From IMG/VR virus record IMGVR_UViG_3300023049_000005, positions 62,001-126,000 of that record: a DNA stretch of 64,000 nt. One strand, 5' to 3'. Within the stretch, counting starts at the first letter, position 1. The number at the start of each line of letters is the position of its first letter. Positions 6,723 to 62,371 of the stretch are shown here, one piece after another. Below the pieces are notes generated by a model. It was not told where the DNA came from. It searched no databases and saw only the letters and a list, made by a program, of their open reading frames with translations. Made by a program: the position numbers and the translations under genes.

Positions 6723-7583
6723 ATGAATAAATCCAACGAAAGTTATCTATTTAACATAGAACAAAAAGCAAGAATGTTCAAAGAAAAGACAAAAAAGGAT
6801 TTTTCGGATTTCTACGAAAAATATTTCCCTAAATTAGTTTTCTACAACAACAACATTTTAAAAGACGAAGAAGCAGCAAAAGACATCGCAACAGATGTGA
6901 TGCTTAAATCTCTTTATAAAATCGATGATTATGATCCTAACAAAGCAAGGTTTTCTACATGGTTGTTTACCATCTCAAAAAACGAGTGTTTTCAATACAA
7001 AAAGAATCAAGCTGATAAATTAATATCAGTTGATAAATTTGTTGATGATGATGGAACTACTATTAAAGACTTCTTAAATGATTCATCTCTTGAAGACGAA
7101 GAAATATTCCAATCGAAAGAATTAGACGATAAGAAAGGGATGATTCTAAAGGAAAGAATAAAACAATTAAAAGAACCATATAGAGAAGTTATCTCTTTAA
7201 GAGAGATCGAACTTAGATCTTATAGAGATATTACTATTATCATGAGAGAAGAAAATGAAATCGAAATCGATGATTCTTATTTCATTACTGATCATATATT
7301 ACATATGGTAGACCCTGAGAAGAAAGAAGATAATGAGTTAATCAAATTTCATACTATCGATAGTGTATTGGATAAATACGGAGATCCTGTTGAATTCACT
7401 ATATTAGATATAGATAAAGATGGTCTTATATCTTGTATAAAATTACCTAAGGGGGAATATACTATCATAGGTGAAACTCCATATAACATTAGTACTATAA
7501 AATCTCAAATAAGAAACGGAAGGAAACTTTTACAGAACGCTGTAAAGGAAGAATTTGAAATCTTGGATAAAACATTTCAATAA
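6723..7583 (+). CDS. ECF-type sigma-70 factor with an insertion in region 4
   Basis: region 2 (AKDIATD..L; FSTWLFTISKN) and region 4 (SYRDI...STIKSQIRNGR). Confidence 0.85.
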   Translation: MNKSNESYLFNIEQKARMFKEKTKKDFSDFYEKYFPKLVFYNNNILKDEEAAKDIATDVMLKSLYKIDDYDPNKARFSTWLFTISKNECFQYKKNQADKLISVDKFVDDDGTTIKDFLNDSSLEDEEIFQSKELDDKKGMILKERIKQLKEPYREVISLREIELRSYRDITIIMREENEIEIDDSYFITDHILHMVDPEKKEDNELIKFHTIDSVLDKYGDPVEFTILDIDKDGLISCIKLPKGEYTIIGETPYNISTIKSQIRNGRKLLQNAVKEEFEILDKTFQ

Positions 7584-7663: not shown

Positions 7664-9430
7664 ATGTCAGAATTATCAAATATATATGATCCAAATACGT
7701 TTATAAAAGAAGTTAGAGATAATCGTTATATACAGATCCAAGATGTGTATGGTGAGGTGGATTTTACTATTGATTACCTTTATTTTTCTTCTGCTATACC
7801 AAACGGTAGATTTTTAACAGTAATTAAAACAGATGAAACTTCTATAAAATTACAATTCACTTCAAGTTCAAAAACAATAACAGGGCTTAATAAACTATTA
7901 GACTTAATAGGAAAGCTCAAAAAGGGTACATATAATCCTACTCCTACGACATCTACAACCGAAACACAAGTTCTTGATTACTCTACTATGTACTCTAGTA
8001 GTAACTTCATAAAAGAGATAGCCCAAGTCAAGTATATCCAAATACAAGATAGATTAGCATCAGAAGTAGTACATTCTATTGATTTTAGTAATGTAACAAC
8101 TACTTTAACACAAGGCAGGTTTGTTTTTATATATCAGACTAATGTAGATCTGATAACATTACAGTTTATATCGAACTCAGAAGCAATCACAGCACATAAC
8201 ATATTAAGGGAAACAATAGATCAGCTAAAAGATGGCACTTATGATAAAGTAAGCTCAACTACTATACACGAACCCACACCATTAGACTACTCTACTATGT
8301 ATTCTAGTAGTAACTTCATAAAAGAAGTATTCCAAGATAGGTATATCCAAATACAAGATAGATTAGCATCAGAAGTAGTACATTCTATTGATTATAATAT
8401 TGTTACTAGTACTTTATTACAAGGTAGGTTTGTAATAGTACAACAAACGAATATGGATTCTATATCATTACAGTTTATATCAAATTCAGAAGCAATTGCT
8501 GCACAAAACTTATTAAGGGAAACAATAGATCAACTAAAGGATGATACATATAGTAAAACTATCAGTGGGGCTACAACCGATACCATATCATTAGACTACT
8601 CCTCTATGTATCATAGTAGTAACTTTATAAAAGAAGTATTCCAAAACCAATATATTCAAATACAAGATAGGTTAGCAGACCAAGTAGTACATTCTATCGA
8701 TTTTAATAATATAACAACCACTTTAACACAAGGTAGATTTGTGTTCATATATCAAACTAATGTAGATCTGATAACATTACAGTTTATATCTAATTCTGAA
8801 TCTATTACTGCTCATACTATATTAAGAGAAACAATAGATCAACTAAAGGACAATACGTATAATAAAACTTCTACTATAATTGGTGGTGTTTTATATGACC
8901 CTAATACTTTTATCAATCAAATAGAATTCGAAGACTATTCTGTACAGTTAAGTGATATAAAAGGTAACATAACAGATTCTATTGTAGCAAGACAAGTAAC
9001 TACTGTGTTTACTAGTGAGAATTTTGTTAAAGTTAAATTTGAAGCAAGTGATGAATTAAAGAGTTATCAATTTGAAACGAGTTCTAAAGCAATAGAAGGG
9101 GCTGAGAAACTTAGAATAGCTATTAAAACAATCACTGATAAATTATCATCAGAGGGTGATGGAAGTGGGGTACAAAGTTACAGCGAAGATTTCAATTCGA
9201 ATATATGGAAATTAGATCCTCCTGTAGATTTCTCTATGAGTTCTTTTAATTTAGATTATTATGAATTAGTATGTCCTGATGGATCTAATACTTGTGCCGA
9301 TGCAGATATTGTGAAACAAAGGTGTAGGGGCTTAGTAGAGATAATAGGGAACGAAGATACTGACGTATTATCTTATATTAATATTTACTTCAATCAAACA
9401 GTTAAAGGTAGAGCAATATTAATCGGATAA
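7664..9430 (+). CDS. late repeat-containing protein, possibly a virion protein
   Basis: about five 103-aa repeats; AATATATA motif 4 nt upstream. Confidence 0.7.
   Translation: MSELSNIYDPNTFIKEVRDNRYIQIQDVYGEVDFTIDYLYFSSAIPNGRFLTVIKTDETSIKLQFTSSSKTITGLNKLLDLIGKLKKGTYNPTPTTSTTETQVLDYSTMYSSSNFIKEIAQVKYIQIQDRLASEVVHSIDFSNVTTTLTQGRFVFIYQTNVDLITLQFISNSEAITAHNILRETIDQLKDGTYDKVSSTTIHEPTPLDYSTMYSSSNFIKEVFQDRYIQIQDRLASEVVHSIDYNIVTSTLLQGRFVIVQQTNMDSISLQFISNSEAIAAQNLLRETIDQLKDDTYSKTISGATTDTISLDYSSMYHSSNFIKEVFQNQYIQIQDRLADQVVHSIDFNNITTTLTQGRFVFIYQTNVDLITLQFISNSESITAHTILRETIDQLKDNTYNKTSTIIGGVLYDPNTFINQIEFEDYSVQLSDIKGNITDSIVARQVTTVFTSENFVKVKFEASDELKSYQFETSSKAIEGAEKLRIAIKTITDKLSSEGDGSGVQSYSEDFNSNIWKLDPPVDFSMSSFNLDYYELVCPDGSNTCADADIVKQRCRGLVEIIGNEDTDVLSYINIYFNQTVKGRAILIG
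7973..8899 (+). repeat. three tandem 309-bp intragenic repeats
   Basis: LDYS.MY.SSNFIKE units start at 7973, 8282 and 8591. Confidence 0.85.
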
Positions 9431-9768: not shown

Positions 9769-10503
9769 CTATTTTTTTGCTTTAATAATAGTATCGATAA
9801 ACGAATCTTTCATTTCCTCTCTTTTCTTTATGATCCTAAAGTCAAGGAATATATAAAACAGTAATAGTAATACTATCATAAAATAAGCAATTAAGTATGT
9901 TTTAAAATAAATATTCTGTGTTTGTATCTCCTCTTCTATTATAACAACTTGTTTATTGATATTGGATTCTATTTGGTTTAGTAATAAATCAATGTTTTCC
10001 ACAATAGTTATATTAACATACGGTGAACCTATAATATATTGATTAGTATATCCGTCATACTCTTTTAAGTGTAGTATATTAGTTAGGTGAATTTCCTTTC
10101 TTTTTAATAGATAATTAATGTTTTTAAGAATACTTCGATCTAAGCCCTTTGATATTTCAAAATCTTTTAGTAGGGATTTCCTGTACTTAGATACAACATA
10201 TCTATAATTTGAGACTAATAATCTTTTGTTATTATATAACCCACCATCTCCGTTAGTATCATTATATAATATAGTTTGTTCTTTGGTTAAAAATAAAATA
10301 GATCTACTTTTAATTTCACTCATTTCACTATTAAGCCTGATTATTTCTTTTTGTTGAGCCTCAATTTGATTAACACTTCTATCATATATCGTATTCAACA
10401 CTAAGGTTGACGTAGAAAATACTACTAATAATATAGCTATTTTAACACTTAAAAGGTTCTTTACCCTAAGGTAATTCCTTATCTTTTTTATCCATTTTAT
10501 CAT
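9769..10503 (-). CDS. two-TM membrane protein with a helical extracytoplasmic domain
   Basis: hydrophobic helices near both ends flanking a helical region. Confidence 0.6.
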   Translation of the reverse strand: MIKWIKKIRNYLRVKNLLSVKIAILLVVFSTSTLVLNTIYDRSVNQIEAQQKEIIRLNSEMSEIKSRSILFLTKEQTILYNDTNGDGGLYNNKRLLVSNYRYVVSKYRKSLLKDFEISKGLDRSILKNINYLLKRKEIHLTNILHLKEYDGYTNQYIIGSPYVNITIVENIDLLLNQIESNINKQVVIIEEEIQTQNIYFKTYLIAYFMIVLLLLFYIFLDFRIIKKREEMKDSFIDTIIKAKK

Positions 10504-10530
10504 ATATTATATATTAAATTTGAAAAAAAA

Positions 10531-10561
10531 TTTGGTAATTAAATAAACTTTATTATATTTG
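10531..10561 (+). promoter_or_regulatory. Bacteroidota housekeeping-sigma promoter for the tRNA operon
   Basis: TTTG (10531-34), 19-nt spacer, TATATTTG (10554-61); a late-type AATATATA also lies at 10587-94. Confidence 0.8.
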
Positions 10562-10599
10562 CACTCTATAAGGAAAAGAAAACTTTAATATATAAGAAA

Positions 10600-10656
10600 A
10601 TGGTATTAGTATTTAAACATAAATTTTTTCATAACCACTGCAAAAGTAGAGGGTGA
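10600..10656 (+). CDS. attenuator leader peptide 1 (His/Lys/Phe-rich) MVLVFKHKFFHNHCKSRG
   Basis: 18 codons with 3 His, 3 Lys, 3 Phe; 3' end carries AAGTAGAGG, complementary to the terminator 5' arm. Confidence 0.8.
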   Translation: MVLVFKHKFFHNHCKSRG

Positions 10657-10689
10657 GATTTTTATGTCTAAAAATTAAACCAAATGATT

Positions 10690-10723
10690 AAAACCTCTAC
10701 TTGAATAAAGTAGAGGTTTTTTT
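10690..10723 (+). terminator. attenuator terminator upstream of the tRNA-His pair
   Basis: AAAACCTCTACTT-GAATA-AAGTAGAGGTTTTTTT. Confidence 0.85.
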
Positions 10724-10730
10724 GTTATAT

Positions 10731-10803
10731 GGTGTTCGTAGCTCAGGGGAAGAGCGTCTGTTTGTGACACAGAAGGTCGGGATCTCGGAATTCCTCGAAC
10801 ACC
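10731..10803 (+). tRNA. tRNA-His(GTG) with atypical T-arm
   Basis: G-1:C73, stem TCTGT/ACAGA, GTG at 10764-66; T-loop CTCGGAA. Confidence 0.75.
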
Positions 10804-10813
10804 CAAAATATAT

Positions 10814-10906
10814 GGTGATTGTAGCTGAATGGTATGTAGTATCTGTAAGAGAACAAGCACTTGGTTGTGACCCAAGAGGATGTCGGTTCGAGTCCGATCT
10901 TTCACC
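10814..10906 (+). tRNA. tRNA-His(GTG) with ~20-nt D-loop insertion
   Basis: G-1:C73, stem CTTGG/CCAAG, GTG at 10867-69, canonical TTCGAGT T-loop. Confidence 0.75.
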
Positions 10907-10923
10907 CAAAATATAAATGAAAA

Positions 10924-11139
10924 ATGGAATATTGTTATATATGCTTTAATGGAACAGAAGAAGAAATGGTGTGTGATACATGTGAAGAACATTATTGCGA
11001 AGATTGTTCGTATATCTTTTCATTACACTACCAATTTCAAAGAAGTAGGTGCTATGAGTGTGCTGATCAGAGTAGAGAATATCCATTGGATAAAGCTGAA
11101 ATAAGAGAAAGAAAAATTAATATGTTATTAGAAGTATGA
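10924..11139 (+). CDS. small Cys-rich zinc-finger protein, C-terminal motif family
   Basis: four CxxC pairs; ends RERKINMLLEV; its stop overlaps the ATG of leader 2 (ATGA). Confidence 0.75.
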   Translation: MEYCYICFNGTEEEMVCDTCEEHYCEDCSYIFSLHYQFQRSRCYECADQSREYPLDKAEIRERKINMLLEV

Positions 11140-11213
11140 GAACAGTAAGTAAAAATATCAAAGGTTTTAAAAAGTTTTTTAAGAAGAACTTTATTAGGGA
11201 CAATACATCCTGA
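11136..11213 (+). CDS. attenuator leader peptide 2 (Lys/Phe-rich) MRTVSKNIKGFKKFFKKNFIRDNTS
   Basis: 25 codons with 6 Lys (3 AAA, 3 AAG) and 4 Phe; contains TATTAGGG, complementary to the terminator 5' arm. Confidence 0.8.
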   Translation: MRTVSKNIKGFKKFFKKNFIRDNTS

Positions 11214-11236
11214 TCGGAAATGATTAATAAATGTAT

Positions 11237-11270
11237 AAGCCCTAATAGAATATCTGTTAGGGCTTTTTTT
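11237..11270 (+). terminator. attenuator terminator upstream of the Lys/Phe tRNA array
   Basis: AAGCCCTAATAGA-ATA-TCTGTTAGGGCTTTTTTT. Confidence 0.85.
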
Positions 11271-11274
11271 ATAT

Positions 11275-11348
11275 CCCCTCTTAACTCAGTTGGCTAGAGT
11301 ACCGTGCTTTTAACACGGGAGTCGCAAGTTCGAGCCTTGTAGGGGGGA
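11275..11348 (+). tRNA. tRNA-Lys(TTT)
   Basis: cloverleaf; CCGTG-CTTTTAA-CACGG. Confidence 0.92.
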
Positions 11349-11356
11349 CAAAATAT

Positions 11357-11444
11357 GCAGGTGTATCCGTAGTTGGTCGAACGGTCCCGCCTTTTAAGCG
11401 GATGAGTGAAAGCTCCAACGTGGGTTCGAATCCCACCACCTGCA
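11357..11444 (+). tRNA. tRNA with Lys(TTT) anticodon and long class-II-type variable arm
   Basis: GCAGGTG/CACCTGC acceptor, CCGC-CTTTTAA-GCGG, extra arm GAGT-GAAA-GCTC, A73. Confidence 0.8.
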
Positions 11445-11449
11445 CAAAC

Positions 11450-11522
11450 GGTGATATAGCTCAGTTGGTAGAGCAGTGGATTGAAGATCCACGTGTCGGG
11501 GGTTCAAGTCCCTCTATCACCA
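11450..11522 (+). tRNA. tRNA-Phe(GAA)
   Basis: cloverleaf; GTGGA-TTGAAGA-TCCAC. Confidence 0.93.
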
Positions 11523-11530
11523 CAACATAT

Positions 11531-11604
11531 TCCCTCGTAGCTCAGTTGGTTAGAGCTACCGACTTTTAATCGGTAAGTCACAGGTTCGAGTCCTGTCGGG
11601 GGAA
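11531..11604 (+). tRNA. tRNA-Lys(TTT)
   Basis: cloverleaf; ACCGA-CTTTTAA-TCGGT. Confidence 0.93.
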
Positions 11605-11609
11605 CATAT

Positions 11610-11681
11610 GGAAACTTAGCTGAGACGGTTTAGCGGAAGGTTGAAGACCTTCAGAGGTGGGTTCGATCCCCACAGTTTCCA
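11610..11681 (+). tRNA. tRNA-Phe(GAA)
   Basis: cloverleaf; GAAGG-TTGAAGA-CCTTC. Confidence 0.9.
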
Positions 11682-11687
11682 CAATAT

Positions 11688-11761
11688 TCCTTCGTAGCTC
11701 AGTTGGCTAGAGTAACTGACTCTTAATCAGTGGGTCACAGGTTCGAGTCCTGTCGGGGGAA
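11688..11761 (+). tRNA. tRNA-Lys(CTT)
   Basis: cloverleaf; ACTGA-CTCTTAA-TCAGT. Confidence 0.93.
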
Positions 11762-11762
11762 C

Positions 11763-11799
11763 TAATCAGAGGTCGTGGGTTCGAATCCCACCGCCTGTA
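11763..11799 (+). pseudogene. 3' half of a tRNA gene
   Basis: TAATCAGA-GGTC-GTGGG-TTCGAAT-CCCAC-CGCCTGT with no 5' half. Confidence 0.7.
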
Positions 11800-11853
11800 T
11801 TTATATTAAAGGTTGAAATAAAAGATTATAACGTAGATGAAAATTAAATAAGA

Positions 11854-12978
11854 TCAAATAATTATTATACCGTCTCTATTAGGCGAAACGCTTAAGATTT
11901 TTATTCTCTGATGGAGATTATCTTGTATATAATTAATATATTGTCTAAAGTTAGGATCTTCTAAATCTGCTTTAACCCATGATTTGAAATCATAATATTT
12001 ACCACCACAATAAATTTTAAGTGGGGTTATATTTTCTAGTACATCAGATTTAGTCATAATTAAATCAGTTACTCCATTTAATTCTATACTCTCTTTTAAT
12101 TCATCTAAGTTTAACCAACCACATCTTCTTGGTCTGCCTGTTGTAGCACCAAACTCCCCACCTGCCTTCTGTATTCTTTCGCCAAGTTGATTTTTTAATT
12201 CAGTTTTCATATCACCATTACCAACTCGTGTTAAATATGATTTAAACACACCATATACTTTACCAACACTCTGAGGTGGCATTGCCAACCCTACACATGC
12301 ACCTGAACTTACTGTATTTGATGAAGTAACATATGGATAAGATCCATGATCAATATCTAACATAGTACCTTGTGCGCCCTCTGCTAGTATTTCACCTTCT
12401 TGGTTTCTTAACCAATTAGACTTAACGATATTTAATGTTTTAAGAAATTCCATACCTACTCTAAAATGTTCGAACTCAAGGAATTCATCTTGGTCTTTAC
12501 CCATTAAATCAACAGGTTCTATATTTAGATCGTTTCCAATAAAATCCACAACTCTATAACCTTCTCGGTATATTTTATCTCGATAACAAGGTCCGATCCC
12601 CTTTGGGGTACTACCTATGGTTGACACATTCTCTTTATCTTCCATAAAATGGAAAGGAGTCACTACGTGTGCGTTTTCTGAAATGAAAATTCTCTCTCTT
12701 GCGTTGGGTATATGTTCTTCAACTTCTTTTATTTCTTGCATCAATTGAAATGGGTCGATAACCATACCATTACCCAAAAAATTCTTTGTGTGTTCATGTA
12801 CTATACCACTTGGTATTAAGTGTAAAACTATTTTTATTCCATTATGATATATCGTATGTCCTGCGTTTGCACCGCCCTGATATCTAGCAACAATATCATA
12901 TTTTTTAGACAACATATCTGTTATCTTTCCTTTTCCTTCGTCTCCAAATTGAAGCCCTACTAATACGTCCATAAACAA
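11854..12978 (-). CDS. purA: adenylosuccinate synthetase
   Basis: GLQFGDEGKGK, GGANAGHT, EGAQG, GATTGRPRRCGW. Confidence 0.97.
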   Translation of the reverse strand: MFMDVLVGLQFGDEGKGKITDMLSKKYDIVARYQGGANAGHTIYHNGIKIVLHLIPSGIVHEHTKNFLGNGMVIDPFQLMQEIKEVEEHIPNARERIFISENAHVVTPFHFMEDKENVSTIGSTPKGIGPCYRDKIYREGYRVVDFIGNDLNIEPVDLMGKDQDEFLEFEHFRVGMEFLKTLNIVKSNWLRNQEGEILAEGAQGTMLDIDHGSYPYVTSSNTVSSGACVGLAMPPQSVGKVYGVFKSYLTRVGNGDMKTELKNQLGERIQKAGGEFGATTGRPRRCGWLNLDELKESIELNGVTDLIMTKSDVLENITPLKIYCGGKYYDFKSWVKADLEDPNFRQYINYIQDNLHQRIKILSVSPNRDGIIII

Positions 12979-14997: not shown

Positions 14998-15621
14998 ATG
15001 ACAATATATGATTTACTAAAAGAATACGGATATGATGCAAATGACTTAAAAGCGAGATTTAAGAATAAGCAAATTGAATTGAATGGCGAAGTAGTGGATA
15101 AAAATGAAAAGATTGGTTTTGTAAAAGAAGTTTTTAGTCAAGGATTTTTTATGGAAAAGCTATATGAATTACCATTTTATCCTGATTTCTCAGATCAATT
15201 AATTTTTATCGGTATTGAAAATTTAATACATGGAGAAAGTAATATCAAAAATGAGATGACTGAATTCTTAAAAGATTATAATATGTTAAAAGTATCTAAA
15301 ACTAAAGCTATTTTCTTTAGTACTTTTGATGAAAAACCTGAAGGTGATACAATAAAAATTCAATTCCATGTTGACACTAAAGGTAAGTATGAGCAAGAGT
15401 ATGAAATACCTGAGGAAAAGGATGAATCAGAAGTTATCGATAAGCTAAAAGCTGATATCGATAAAGTAGAAAAACAATTATCAAACCCAGGTTTTGTTAA
15501 CAACGCACCTAAGTTTAAAGTAGATGCTGCTAAGAACAGATTAGAAACTTTAAAGAAAAAGTTAGCTGATATGGGCGTAAATGAATCTAAAGGTATTAAG
15601 AGATTTAAAGACTTTAACTAA
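14998..15621 (+). CDS. S4-like domain fused to a ValRS C-terminal coiled-coil arm
   Basis: KQLSNPGFVNNAPKFKV matches the ValRS C-terminal arm; N-terminus resembles a TyrRS S4 domain. Confidence 0.65.
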   Translation: MTIYDLLKEYGYDANDLKARFKNKQIELNGEVVDKNEKIGFVKEVFSQGFFMEKLYELPFYPDFSDQLIFIGIENLIHGESNIKNEMTEFLKDYNMLKVSKTKAIFFSTFDEKPEGDTIKIQFHVDTKGKYEQEYEIPEEKDESEVIDKLKADIDKVEKQLSNPGFVNNAPKFKVDAAKNRLETLKKKLADMGVNESKGIKRFKDFN

Positions 15622-43533: not shown

Positions 43534-43540
43534 AATGGAG

Positions 43541-43913
43541 TGGAGATGGAGGGAGTCGAACCCTCGTCACAGACACTTTAGTATAATACTTTCTACAAGT
43601 TTAGTTTACATAGTTAGGGTAAACACCTTAGTTAAACTTATTTTTTTAAACTGTTCTAATCAAACCAAAATTCAGTCCTTCTTATAATAACTGCTAAGAA
43701 GTTTGCAGCTTGGAGTTTTGTCGGTTGCTTAGACAGCTAATACAAGTTCTCCGTCTTGTACAGATTCCGTAGAATCTAATGCGTCTAAAACGTCAATCTT
43801 TTCAGATACTACGTTTAATTGTTTATCTACTAATTTATTAATCGGACACTTTAATAGACAATCCGATACTTGCTTACACTATCTGAAAATGACGCTCTAA
43901 TCCAGTCACCCCC
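43541..43913 (-). ncRNA. ssrA: tmRNA
   Basis: 5' GGGGGTGACTGGATT; 3' GACGAGGGTTCGACTCCCTCCATCTCCA; G3.U70 pair; internal tag frame 43812-43729. Confidence 0.9.
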
Positions 43914-43978: not shown

Positions 43979-44533
43979 ATGGATAATAACAAATTAATAG
44001 TATTAGATATAGACGAAACTCTATTTCATTGTGAATATGAATTAGAGGATTTTGACTATGTGTTCGAAGAAGATAATATTATGTACTATACTAAGAAAAG
44101 ACCTTATCTAGAAGAGTTTCTGAATTATATTAAAGGAAATTTCAAGTATGGTATCTATACTACAGCAGGTGAAGATTATACTAAAATACACATGAAAAAG
44201 CTGAATTTAGACCCATTATTCCTCCTATCTTATAAAAATTGTACCCAAAAAAGGAAATTTAGTATGGGTGAGCAGAATGGATATACTTCTGAATGGTACT
44301 CATTAAAGAAACTTGATAAAGTAAAAAGGTATAGTGATAAATCTAATATGATTGCTATCGATGATAAATGGGAAAGTTTTGCTAATGATTACGGAAACTT
44401 AATTAAAGTGAATCCTTTTACGGGTGATATAAATGATACTACCTTAAAGAAACTTATGAAATATTTAGAAGATCTTAAAGGTGTGAAAAATATTAGAAAG
44501 GTTGAGAAACGGGGTTGGATGAGTAAATATTAA
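43979..44533 (+). CDS. HAD-family FCP1/NIF-like phosphatase
   Basis: VLDIDETL, KRPYLEEFL, IYTTA, AIDD. Confidence 0.88.
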   Translation: MDNNKLIVLDIDETLFHCEYELEDFDYVFEEDNIMYYTKKRPYLEEFLNYIKGNFKYGIYTTAGEDYTKIHMKKLNLDPLFLLSYKNCTQKRKFSMGEQNGYTSEWYSLKKLDKVKRYSDKSNMIAIDDKWESFANDYGNLIKVNPFTGDINDTTLKKLMKYLEDLKGVKNIRKVEKRGWMSKY

Positions 44534-61990: not shown

Positions 61991-62371
61991 CTATATCAAG
62001 TTATTTATTATTTGATCTCTTTTTATAATCTTCTCTATATCTATTGTAGTATAGAATCCATATCGAGCATTCGATTTATATTTTTGGTAAAAGTCAATAC
62101 TCCACAGTTCACCTAATTCTGAATAAGAATTAAATATACTATATCTATTTATACCACTTAAGGCTGTTTTATCTGACCCTGTGGTTATCTTATAAACACC
62201 ACCTTTAGTTTCTCTTTCTCCAAAATCACCATAATAATACACACCATTATCAACTTCAATAGTAAATTCTAATTTATAATCTCGTGCTAAAGCACTTTTC
62301 GTTATATACTTATCTATATTATTGAAAATGGTAATAATATCCTCTGTTAGTGGTTTTCGTTTAATCTTCAT
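61991..62371 (-). CDS. hypothetical protein, paralog of 62749..63174, C-terminal motif family
   Basis: YGDFG, GINRY, YQKYK shared; ends RDQIINNLI. Confidence 0.7.
   Translation of the reverse strand: MKIKRKPLTEDIITIFNNIDKYITKSALARDYKLEFTIEVDNGVYYYGDFGERETKGGVYKITTGSDKTALSGINRYSIFNSYSELGELWSIDFYQKYKSNARYGFYTTIDIEKIIKRDQIINNLI

Follow-up and report, generated by a model that had tools for sequence, protein, structure and literature searches.

The locus lies in a window, i.e. the whole stretch of DNA that was analysed, of 64,000 nucleotides from the genome of a giant phage (IMG/VR record IMGVR_UViG_3300023049_000005, positions 62,001 to 126,000), and contains two successive sets of tRNA genes, each preceded by a small ORF and an intrinsic terminator (Table 1; coordinates are those of the window). 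The first unit, here called gate 1, precedes two atypical tRNA-His-like genes and is followed by a gene for a Cys-rich protein, and the second, gate 2, precedes an array of tRNA genes that are only for Lys and Phe.

Organization of the two leader–tRNA units

Table 1. Features of the leader–tRNA region and their coordinates in the window
Coordinates	Strand	Feature	Details
6723-7583		Sigma factor	Encoded by the phage
10531-10561	+	Promoter-like element	Bacteroidota type (TTTG, 19 nt, TAnnTTTG); contains the clade-conserved AAACTTTnnTATnTTTG motif
10600-10656	+	Leader ORF 1	18 codons; His codons at positions 7, 11 and 13 interleaved with Lys and Phe codons
10643-10653	+	5′ strand of antiterminator 1	Copy of the terminator-1 3′ arm, at the end of leader ORF 1; duplex with the terminator 5′ arm -13.7 kcal/mol, z -3.9 against shuffles; hairpin 10641-10704 at -14.6, z -3.3
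10690-10726	+	Intrinsic terminator 1	13-bp stem plus T run, ending about 5 nt before the first tRNA; -17.1 kcal/mol, z -6.2
10732-10906	+	Two atypical tRNA-His(GTG)-like genes	10732-10803 and 10815-10906; Rfam tRNA model 44.9 and 51.6 bits (gathering score 29)
10924-11139	+	Zn-finger-like protein gene	71 aa; eight Cys in CxxC pairs; TGA stop overlaps the start of leader 2 (ATGA)
11136-11213	+	Leader ORF 2	25 codons; 3 AAA, 3 AAG and 4 TTT codons
11160-11192	+	Sensor run of leader 2	KGFKKFFKKNF, 5 Lys and 4 Phe codons in 11; 5′ part also pairs with 11184-11201 as a possible 1:2 protector helix
11190-11208	+	5′ strand of antiterminator 2	TTTATTAGGG (11190-99) plus ATACAT, just 3′ of the sensor run and inside the ORF; duplex -12.0 kcal/mol, z -3.1, p 0.007
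11231-11249	+	3′ strand of antiterminator 2	ATGTAT plus CCCTAATAGA (11240-49); overlaps the terminator 5′ arm
11237-11272	+	Intrinsic terminator 2	13-bp stem (11237-11265), 3-nt loop and T run, ending 4 nt before the first tRNA; -18.3 kcal/mol, z -5.6
11275-11762	+	Six tRNA genes	Lys(ttt), 89-nt long-variable-arm Lys(ttt), Phe(gaa), Lys(ttt), Phe(gaa), Lys(ctt)
11763-11800	+	3′ half of a tRNA-Lys-like gene	Fused to the end of the array; probably a deletion scar

The six genes of the Lys/Phe array were called by both ARAGORN and Rfam, and there are no others in it, whereas the two tRNA-His-like genes score well above the gathering threshold of the Rfam tRNA model but are not called by ARAGORN. 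Relatives carry a short LysRS-like gene at the position where the array ends in a truncated tRNA-Lys-like gene. The promoter-like element appears to drive the whole operon, and thereby both gates, as it is the only such motif on the + strand between positions 9000 and 13000 that lies near the tRNAs. No promoter motif of this type lies between gate 1 and the array, although other promoter types cannot be excluded.

The initial annotation proposed that the Lys/Phe-rich small ORF, translationally coupled to the Zn-finger gene, gates the Lys/Phe array through mutually exclusive terminator and antiterminator structures, and its description of the sequence is confirmed. Among 334 small ATG ORFs in the window, leader ORF 2 is the only one with 8 or more Lys plus Phe in 11 residues, having 9 whereas the next best has 7. 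Under a second-order Markov null, the probability of such a run is about 3e-5 per small ORF. By contrast, the mixed use of AAA and AAG, which had also been pointed out, is not significant, since AAG makes up 28% of the Lys codons in long ORFs (p = 0.22).

Coupling of leader 2 to the Zn-finger gene is plausible, given that the leader start overlaps or abuts the upstream stop in the window (ATGA) as well as in two contigs of related phages, L009 (ATGATTAA) and L084 (TAAgATG). It is not a general requirement, however, because most leaders have their own promoter and A-rich 5′ UTR, and Zn-finger homologues elsewhere (55-60% identity) are not next to tRNAs. In two contigs, L003 and L004, the homologue follows a methyltransferase-like gene and no tRNAs are nearby. 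The Zn-finger gene is therefore not an obligatory partner, and its product has no Pfam, PHROG or PDB match.

Predicted folding of the leader

The proposed antiterminator, in which 11190-99 pairs with 11240-49 and encloses the nested ATACAT/ATGTAT helix, is the MFE structure of 11188-11251 at -19.6 kcal/mol (z -5.35), and none of 200 shuffled sequences folds as well. It is also the MFE structure of the nascent transcript before the 3′ arm of the terminator exists. Since both the antiterminator and the terminator use 11237-11249, the two are mutually exclusive. At equilibrium, the full-length RNA always folds into the terminator, also when ribosome constraints are imposed, so the switch has to be kinetic, and folding was instead modelled at the nascent-transcript stage. 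With a ribosome footprint on the leader, the terminator 5′ arm is sequestered with a probability of 0.64-0.76 while the A site is on codons 1-15 (about 0.76 on codons 10-14), which falls to 0.00-0.01 at codons 18-19 and is 0.11 at the stop codon. In all 17 leaders tested, the fall comes within a few codons of the end of the sensor run. In this footprint model, the last four K/F codons of leader 2 (16, 17, 19, plus N18) lie too close to the antiterminator to act as productive stall sites. Lys (AAA/AAG) and Phe (TTT) codons are moreover mutually complementary, and part of the K/F run may be shaped by the RNA helix it forms.

No Rfam leader family reaches its threshold here. The best Rfam match, to His_leader (RF00514) at 11155-11272, reaches 34.1 bits against a gathering score of 49, and this and the matches to trpB and PyrR are sub-threshold and reflect a shared hairpin-plus-T-run architecture. 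Nothing but tRNA and tmRNA passes the gathering score in the window, and no T-box match was found in 10400-12000 even at E <= 1.

Leaders and tRNA arrays in related phages

About 23 distinct leaders with the same layout, covering 10 amino-acid sets, were found in related jumbo and mega-phage contigs. A DNA search of the phage collection with 10500-11900 returned only generic tRNA similarity and no syntenic relative, an exact pattern derived from the long-arm tRNA-Lys found only the same genome, and a promoter/UTR pattern with a narrow gap found two loci. A wider promoter/UTR pattern hit 61 places in metagenome contigs, of which about 24 have a leader plus tRNAs, whereas none of its 23 hits in 596 Gb of prokaryotic genomes do. 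Roughly 35 of the 61 metagenome hits, 4 of the 7 viral hits and all 23 genome hits lack a small ORF plus tRNAs and were set aside, and one contig (L020) belongs to a different phage with ordinary tRNA clusters and no leader. A scan of viral contigs with a single LysRS sequence found nothing, whereas an alignment-based scan was successful. No cultured relative was found through LysRS (best 43% identity). The promoter motif and an A-rich UTR also precede the leaders in the related contigs L012, L013, L014, L015, L019, L085, L088 and L089.

The codon run of the leader matches the downstream tRNAs across these relatives. Runs of the type YYEE, YYYEEE or YYYEYEY precede Glu/Tyr arrays, QPQPW-type runs precede Gln/Pro/Trp, PQIQDQDQP precedes Gln/Pro/Asp, G/D runs precede Met/Asp/Gly, and SRSRSSRS precedes Ser/Arg. 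A run of K, H, F, (W, S) precedes His/Lys/Phe/Trp(/Ser), KKKKKRK precedes five Lys tRNAs, and K-rich leaders are found directly before LysRS. In the same genome as the window, an N/L/I/T/C/V/M run precedes exactly those tRNAs. In a 17 x 8 enrichment matrix, every leader's best class is that of its own array, and for the two arrays cut by a contig end (in L025 and L027) the best class contains the tRNAs seen. Sensor codons vary synonymously (CCA/CCC/CCT/CCG, CAA/CAG, AAG/AAA) while the amino acid is kept, indicating that selection acts on the decoded amino acid.

The helices covary as well. Terminator stems differ between leaders, and each has its own complement just 3′ of the sensor run. Own duplexes average about -11.9 kcal/mol against about -6.9 for foreign pairs, and the own arm ranks first in 9 of 19 and in the top three in 16 of 19, with a mean z against shuffles of -2.2, although antiterminator duplexes are weak in a few leaders (L012, L013b and L015).

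For the K/F leader itself the comparison is narrower, because only one relative, the nearly identical L009, covers the leader, and one other, L083, is cut at the leader. In L009 the K/F run is kept, the frame and start are conserved despite four substituted N-terminal codons, one Lys codon shows a synonymous AAG to AAA change, and the terminator is conserved with a loop substitution. In L083 one terminator stem pair shows a compensatory change and one pair is added. Leader ORF 1 is 100% identical in L009 and is homologous to the leaders of L079/L080, L085, L088 and L089, which precede His or His/Lys/Phe/Trp arrays. Since leader ORF 1 also holds Lys and Phe codons in the effective zone, gate 1 is not a pure His gate but would sense Lys, His and Phe.

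A candidate ribosome-mediated attenuator of phage tRNA genes

On the basis of this computational evidence, we consider it likely that the region 11136-11272 is a ribosome-mediated (leader-peptide) transcription attenuator controlling read-through into the phage's own Lys and Phe tRNA genes, as the initial annotation had suggested. AT bias does not account for the K/F run, and conservation is not lacking. In the proposed mechanism, transcription would start at the promoter-like element and pass gate 1, the two His-like tRNAs and the Zn-finger gene, and ribosomes would enter the leader, probably by re-initiation at the ATGA overlap. If Lys-tRNA or Phe-tRNA is scarce, the ribosome would stall in the K/F run (codons 9-15), leaving the 5′ strand of antiterminator 2 free to pair with its 3′ strand as it emerges, so that the terminator cannot form and RNA polymerase runs into the tRNA array. 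If decoding is fast, the ribosome would move over the 5′ strand to the stop codon, the antiterminator would be blocked, and transcription would stop before the first tRNA. Translation of the leader, stalling, the direction of the switch and the physiological trigger are inferred. The net effect would be a negative feedback in which Lys and Phe tRNAs are made when ribosomes are short of them, and in relatives the same transcript also carries a LysRS-like gene. Gate 1 would work in the same way, such that a His shortage would open only gate 1 whereas a Lys or Phe shortage would open both. A specific link to tRNA-Lys cleavage, which was also raised initially, remains speculation.

Among the alternatives, all of which seem unlikely, the one that survives best is that the small ORF is translated but the hairpins act as a general check on translation competence, or as a timing or polarity device, for example with read-through requiring completed translation. 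Consistent with this, the nascent gate-2 RNA is predicted to form the antiterminator without any ribosome (P 0.66), so that the behaviour without translation is unclear, and in five leaders the antiterminator partner is re-exposed when the ribosome reaches the stop codon. However, this would explain neither why the codon run matches the downstream tRNAs nor why the antiterminator strand always lies just 3′ of the run. It is also improbable that the hairpin simply terminates the Zn-finger transcript, with the small ORF being a fortuitous or independent micro-gene and the array having its own promoter or being made from processed read-through. Terminators after small genes are common in phages, and since the phage encodes its own sigma factor, unrecognised promoter types could exist. 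However, the terminators of both gates end within a few nucleotides of the first tRNA with no recognised promoter motif in between, the antiterminator is as stable as the terminator, and the layout recurs with matched codons in about 23 leaders. Direct reading of the codon run by tRNA anticodons in the manner of a T-box, or binding by a protein, is more doubtful still. The run does present many cognate codons in a single-stranded or weakly paired region, and T-box elements show that RNA can sense tRNA directly, but in addition to the lack of a T-box match, the runs are always in frame with an ATG, inside ORFs of 18-35 codons that end near the antiterminator, synonymous variation keeps the amino acid rather than the nucleotide sequence, and one leader can carry codons for up to seven amino acids, which is hard to reconcile with a single specifier. 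That the peptide itself is the functional product, for example as a nascent-chain arrest peptide or a small basic peptide, might be suggested by an N-terminal motif (M-K-N-L/V-N-L/V-N-I) shared by leaders across different arrays and by the hydrophobic N-terminal half of the L084 leader, yet it is the sensor segment that changes in step with the tRNAs, and the C-terminal parts are unrelated and dictated by the local terminator sequence. Chance in a genome of 29% GC, where AAA and TTT are common, is refuted by the run statistics, the structure z-scores and the covariation across loci.

The closest parallel is presumably the leader-peptide attenuator of the E. coli pheST operon (pheM leader), along with the pheA (pheL), his and trp leaders, which likewise have a short ORF with a run of regulatory codons, an intrinsic terminator just before the regulated genes, and an antiterminator that shares a strand with the terminator and lies just 3′ of the regulatory codons. 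As in pheST, the regulated unit in L009, L083-L085 and L088-L089 includes an aminoacyl-tRNA synthetase. In contrast to these operons, the regulated products here are tRNA genes, so that decoding speed would be fed back directly onto tRNA supply rather than amino-acid supply, the system is encoded by a phage, one leader can sense two to seven amino acids, the leaders form a modular family with interchangeable sensor segments, and two attenuators are stacked in one operon. T-box riboswitches of Firmicutes also couple the state of a specific tRNA to a terminator/antiterminator choice upstream of translation-related genes, but they sense uncharged tRNA through one specifier codon and a conserved T-box sequence, without an ORF. 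Predicted attenuators of Bacteroidota amino-acid operons, such as the Rfam Bacteroid-trp motif, would indicate that the likely host phylum uses ribosome-mediated attenuation without Shine-Dalgarno-driven initiation, although those regulate biosynthetic enzymes in cellular genomes. Phage tRNA clusters that offset host tRNA loss, such as the T4 and T5 tRNA regions and phage tRNAs that counter anticodon nucleases, sustain translation when host tRNAs are insufficient or cleaved, but to our knowledge are not described as gated by codon-matched leader peptides. No description of leader-peptide attenuation of tRNA genes or of phage tRNA arrays was found in full-text literature searches, which did not cover most subscription journals.

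A broader reading, which we regard as somewhat more probable than not, is that a clade of marine and aquatic jumbo and mega-phages, with contigs of 150-650 kb and probably infecting Bacteroidota, organises essentially its whole tRNA complement, several aminoacyl-tRNA synthetase genes included, into arrays sorted by amino-acid set, each behind a reprogrammable leader peptide whose codons spell out the content of the array. The phage would thus run a codon-by-codon homeostat of decoding capacity, in which ribosome stalling, from codon-usage mismatch, host shut-off or host tRNA-cleaving defences, switches on exactly the missing tRNAs, and the window would show a two-tier version of it.

Leader-peptide attenuation is a textbook mechanism, known for amino-acid biosynthesis operons and a few synthetase operons, where the signal reports amino-acid supply. 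Here the same device appears to control tRNA genes themselves, inside a virus, with sensor segments that have been rewritten many times to match different tRNA sets. If confirmed, it would show how large phages regulate their big tRNA repertoires, which are usually treated as constitutive codon-usage patches, and would be a natural, direct feedback loop from ribosome speed at given codons to the supply of the matching tRNA. It would also make testable the idea that phage tRNAs are deployed in response to tRNA depletion, including that caused by host anticodon nucleases, and would offer a family of compact, modular parts reporting the decoding capacity for chosen codons. The covariation between leader and array gives in addition a new way to annotate odd phage tRNAs, since the leader says which amino acids the array is meant to serve.

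The window and its proposed Lys/Phe attenuator

The window, which has about 29% GC, is part of a 270,756-bp viral contig, IMGVR_UViG_3300023049_000005 = Ga0136601_1000001. It encodes a sigma factor, PRPP synthetase, a PurA-type adenylosuccinate synthetase and a tmRNA. The adenylosuccinate synthetase homologue keeps the PurA-type GDEGKGK motif, although its best PHROG is annotated as the 2-aminoadenine-pathway enzyme, and about 27 phage-like homologues at 55-76% identity exist in metagenomes. A Bacteroidota host is inferred from two observations, namely that the promoter-like motifs are of the TTTG...TAnnTTTG type and that the nearest cellular PurA homologues are from Bacteroidia. A further protein of 588 aa is built of about four internal repeats of roughly 100 residues, each ending in a '...QFxSxSxxIxA...LxxxIDQLKD' type segment, and has no family match.

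All elements named in the initial annotation, which had described a Lys/Phe-rich leader ORF coupled to a Zn-finger gene and followed by a terminator and a Lys/Phe-only tRNA array, with a candidate antiterminator competing with the terminator, are present at the positions assigned to them. The leader ORF of 25 codons contains the run KGFKKFFKKNF, with 3 AAA, 3 AAG and 4 TTT codons, and its ATG overlaps the TGA of the preceding ORF, which encodes a 71-aa protein with eight Cys. A 13-bp hairpin plus a T run follows, and four nucleotides later come six tRNA genes, only Lys (ttt, ttt, ttt, ctt) and Phe (gaa, gaa). The K/F run is not explained by AT bias: it is the only one of 334 small ORFs in the window with 8 or more K+F in 11 residues, and under a second-order Markov null such a run occurs in about 3e-5 of small ORFs. 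The mixed use of AAA and AAG, which had also been pointed out in the initial annotation, is on the other hand not remarkable (p 0.22).

Coordinates of the features (window positions unless a contig handle is given)
Feature	Position	Strand	Remark
588-aa repeat protein	7664-9430	+	No family match
Promoter-like element	10531-10561		Only one near the tRNAs on this strand
Leader ORF 1	10600-10656		18 codons, three His codons interleaved with Lys and Phe codons
Copy of the 3' arm of terminator 1	10643-10653
Terminator 1	10690-10720
Two atypical tRNA-His(GTG)-like genes	10732-10906		At 10732-10803 and 10815-10906
Zn-finger gene	10924-11139
Leader ORF 2	11136-11213
Segment able to pair with the 5' half of the K/F run	11184-11201		Possible protector helix
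Proposed antiterminator	11190-11208 with 11231-11249		Encloses a small hairpin; MFE of 11188-11251
Terminator 2 hairpin	11237-11265		Shares 11237-11249 with the antiterminator
Long-variable-arm tRNA-Lys	11357-11445
3' half of a tRNA-Lys-like gene	11763-11800		Fused directly to the end of tRNA-Lys(ctt)
Adenylosuccinate synthetase homologue	11854-12978	-
Short protein corresponding to a piece of an aminoacyl-tRNA synthetase	14998-15621	+
tmRNA	43538-43913	-	Promoter-like motif near 43993
Short proteins corresponding to pieces of aminoacyl-tRNA synthetases	L009 3530-4159; L012 2712-3308
GOLLD RNA	L013 12916-13322	-
tRNA-like gene with a non-canonical T arm	L019 about 706-780
ORFs inserted at or near arrays	L015 2493-3146; L088 about 1750-2475; L089 about 1460-2070
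Lys-rich mini-ORFs with hairpins	L089 about 2070-2310

The proposed antiterminator folds at -19.6 kcal/mol (z -5.35) and the terminator at -18.3 kcal/mol (z -5.6), and since they share one strand only one of them can exist at a time. When only the RNA up to the terminator loop is folded, the antiterminator is the predicted structure, whereas with the full RNA at equilibrium the terminator wins; the choice must therefore be kinetic, as in classical attenuators. We then added a ribosome footprint, extending from 15 nt before to 12 nt after the first base of the A-site codon. In this model, which is approximate, the probability that the 5' arm of the terminator is held by upstream sequence is 0.64-0.76 with the A site at codons 1-15, 0.44 at codon 16, 0.00-0.01 at codons 18-19 and 0.11 at the stop codon. 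The 5' half of the K/F run can also pair with a segment further downstream, giving a possible protector helix, which is possible because Lys and Phe codons are complementary.

A second gate of the same design lies upstream. The promoter-like element is followed by an A-rich UTR and by leader ORF 1, and the copy of the 3' arm of the next terminator forms a duplex of -13.7 kcal/mol (z -3.9), the hairpins folding at -14.6 and -17.1. The two atypical tRNA-His(GTG)-like genes that follow are scored at 44.9 and 51.6 bits by Rfam but are missed by ARAGORN. These genes, as well as a gene of L019 (a locus elsewhere in this same genome), have a non-canonical T arm (GGGATCTCGGAATTCC in place of GGTTCGAATCC), and one has a 21-nt insertion in the D loop; in both arrays of this genome the odd-T-arm gene is the first one after the terminator. 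The inferred unit is promoter, leader 1, attenuator 1, two His tRNAs, Zn-finger gene, leader 2, attenuator 2 and Lys/Phe array.

Related loci and the match between leaders and arrays

The same locus is carried by L009, a contig whose PurA homologue is 76% identical to that of the window, and which is the only informative relative for the K/F leader itself. Leader 1 and terminator 1 are identical in sequence. Leader 2 has four substituted N-terminal codons but keeps its frame, its overlap with the Zn-finger stop (ATGATTAA) and the K/F run, in which one Lys codon shows a synonymous AAG to AAA change. The array is again only Lys and Phe, in a different order, and is followed on the same strand by a short LysRS-like gene (NCBIfam lysine-tRNA ligase, 1e-118). 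Relatives have such a gene, of about 395-408 aa, at the position where the window has only the 3' half of a tRNA-Lys-like gene, so that the latter looks like a deletion scar. Other short proteins in the window, L009 and L012 (a related contig) correspond to pieces of aminoacyl-tRNA synthetases, namely the ValRS C-terminal arm, the N-terminal part of HisRS and the middle part of GluRS, and may be split or degenerate synthetases or tRNA-binding accessory proteins. No cultured relative was found.

More distant contigs were recovered through PurA homologues, a promoter/UTR pattern and LysRS homologues, and carry tRNA arrays for other amino-acid sets. Each array is preceded by a small ORF and a terminator, and most also by a promoter and UTR, and in every case the codon run names the array.

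Codon runs of leaders and the genes downstream of them (L numbers are our handles for contigs and loci)
Codon run in leader	Downstream genes	Loci
YYEE(S)(E)	Glu and Tyr tRNAs	L012/L075, L031
YYYEEE and YYYEYEY	Tyr and Glu tRNAs	L013, two leaders
QPQPWQPQPQ and variants	Gln, Pro, Trp tRNAs	L014, L045, L057, L027/L030/L076
PQIQDQDQP	Gln, Pro, Asp tRNAs	L015/L016/L073, L059
G/D-rich runs	Met, Asp, Gly tRNAs	L074, L025
Run of N, L, I, T, C, V, M	Asn, Leu, Ile, Thr, Val, Met, Cys tRNAs	L019/L072, elsewhere in this same genome; also L069
SRSRSSRS	Ser and Arg tRNAs	L089
R-rich run	Arg tRNA	L055
Runs of K, H, F with W and S	His, Lys, Phe, Trp (and Ser) tRNAs	L085, L088, L089
KKKKKRK	Five Lys tRNAs and no Phe	L084
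K-rich leaders	LysRS-like gene directly	L086, L087 (L087 is from the 656-kb record OU342829.1)

In a 17 x 8 enrichment matrix, every leader scores best against the class of its own array, and for the two arrays cut by a contig end (L025, L027) the best class contains the tRNAs seen. Sensor codons vary synonymously between homologous leaders while the amino acid is kept, which points to selection on what is decoded rather than on RNA sequence. Covariation was also apparent at the level of whole helices. Terminator stems differ completely between leaders, and each has its own complement inside the ORF, just 3' of the sensor run. Own duplexes average about -11.9 kcal/mol against about -6.9 for foreign combinations, although several antiterminator duplexes in other leaders are weak, and the own arm ranks first in 9 of 19 cases and in the top three in 16 of 19, where the chance expectation for first rank is one in 19. 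The ribosome-footprint profile shows the same step, sequestered at the sensor codons and released a few codons later, in all 17 leaders analysed. As controls, the promoter/UTR pattern hit 23 sites in 596 Gb of prokaryotic genomes, none of which has a leader ORF with tRNAs, and an unrelated phage with tRNA clusters (L020) has no such leader.

In the window and in L009, L014, L015, L019, L031, L045, L074 and L083-L085, many amino acids have both a normal tRNA (73-77 nt) and a class-II-like one with a long variable arm (83-97 nt), examples being Lys 89, Asn 88, Thr 86, Val 85, Cys 87, Met 87, Gly 89, Glu 86, Pro 90-96, Trp 86-91, Gln 85 and His 89. The long Lys tRNA shows a compensatory change in its anticodon stem between the window and L009, so it is under selection. 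ORFs are inserted between an attenuator and its array, within an array, or between array and LysRS; those of L015 and L088 look like HNH endonucleases, and the regulatory module seems to tolerate mobile insertions. In L089, two mini-ORFs of 10-12 codons, rich in Lys codons, each sit with a hairpin immediately before a single tRNA-Lys gene and may be miniature gates for individual tRNAs, although the hairpins lack an obvious T run. Finally, a GOLLD RNA (Rfam RF02032, 255 bits) lies in L013, a related 259-kb contig, in a gene-free gap a few kb from PurA.

Proposed mechanism and relation to known attenuators

On the computational evidence presented here, the best-supported reading is classical ribosome-mediated attenuation with a new target. 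It is inferred that stalling on Lys or Phe codons keeps the 5' strand of the antiterminator free to trap the 5' arm of the terminator, and polymerase reads into the tRNA genes, whereas smooth translation carries the ribosome over that segment and the terminator forms. In function this would work like the pheST, pheA, his and trp attenuators and it conforms to their structural criteria, except that the protector helix is uncertain. It belongs to no curated RNA family: Rfam has no family for these elements, the best match being a sub-threshold His_leader hit, and there is no T-box match. Full-text searches of an incomplete body of literature found no report of attenuation of tRNA genes or of codon-matched leaders before phage tRNA arrays. 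Entry of ribosomes into leader 2 by re-initiation at the ATGA overlap is plausible, and the same tight junction is seen in L009 and L084.

Leader 1 carries Lys, Phe and His codons in its effective zone (P 0.66 for codons 3-11) and is homologous to the K/H/F/W leaders of L085, L088 and L089. We therefore propose a two-tier control, in which any of the three shortages opens gate 1 and only a Lys or Phe shortage opens gate 2. A phage-encoded tmRNA (Rfam 59.3 bits), preceded by a TTTG...TAnnTTTG promoter-like motif, is also present, and a relative (L010) encodes SmpB; a ribosome-rescue system sits in a phage that appears to use programmed ribosome stalling. More tRNA helps only if tRNA or charging capacity is limiting, not the amino acid itself, and the likely trigger is therefore inferred to be tRNA shortage during infection, of which codon-usage mismatch of an AT-rich phage, host shut-off or host tRNA cleavage are possible causes. 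The co-transcribed LysRS-like gene in relatives fits a complete decoding module.
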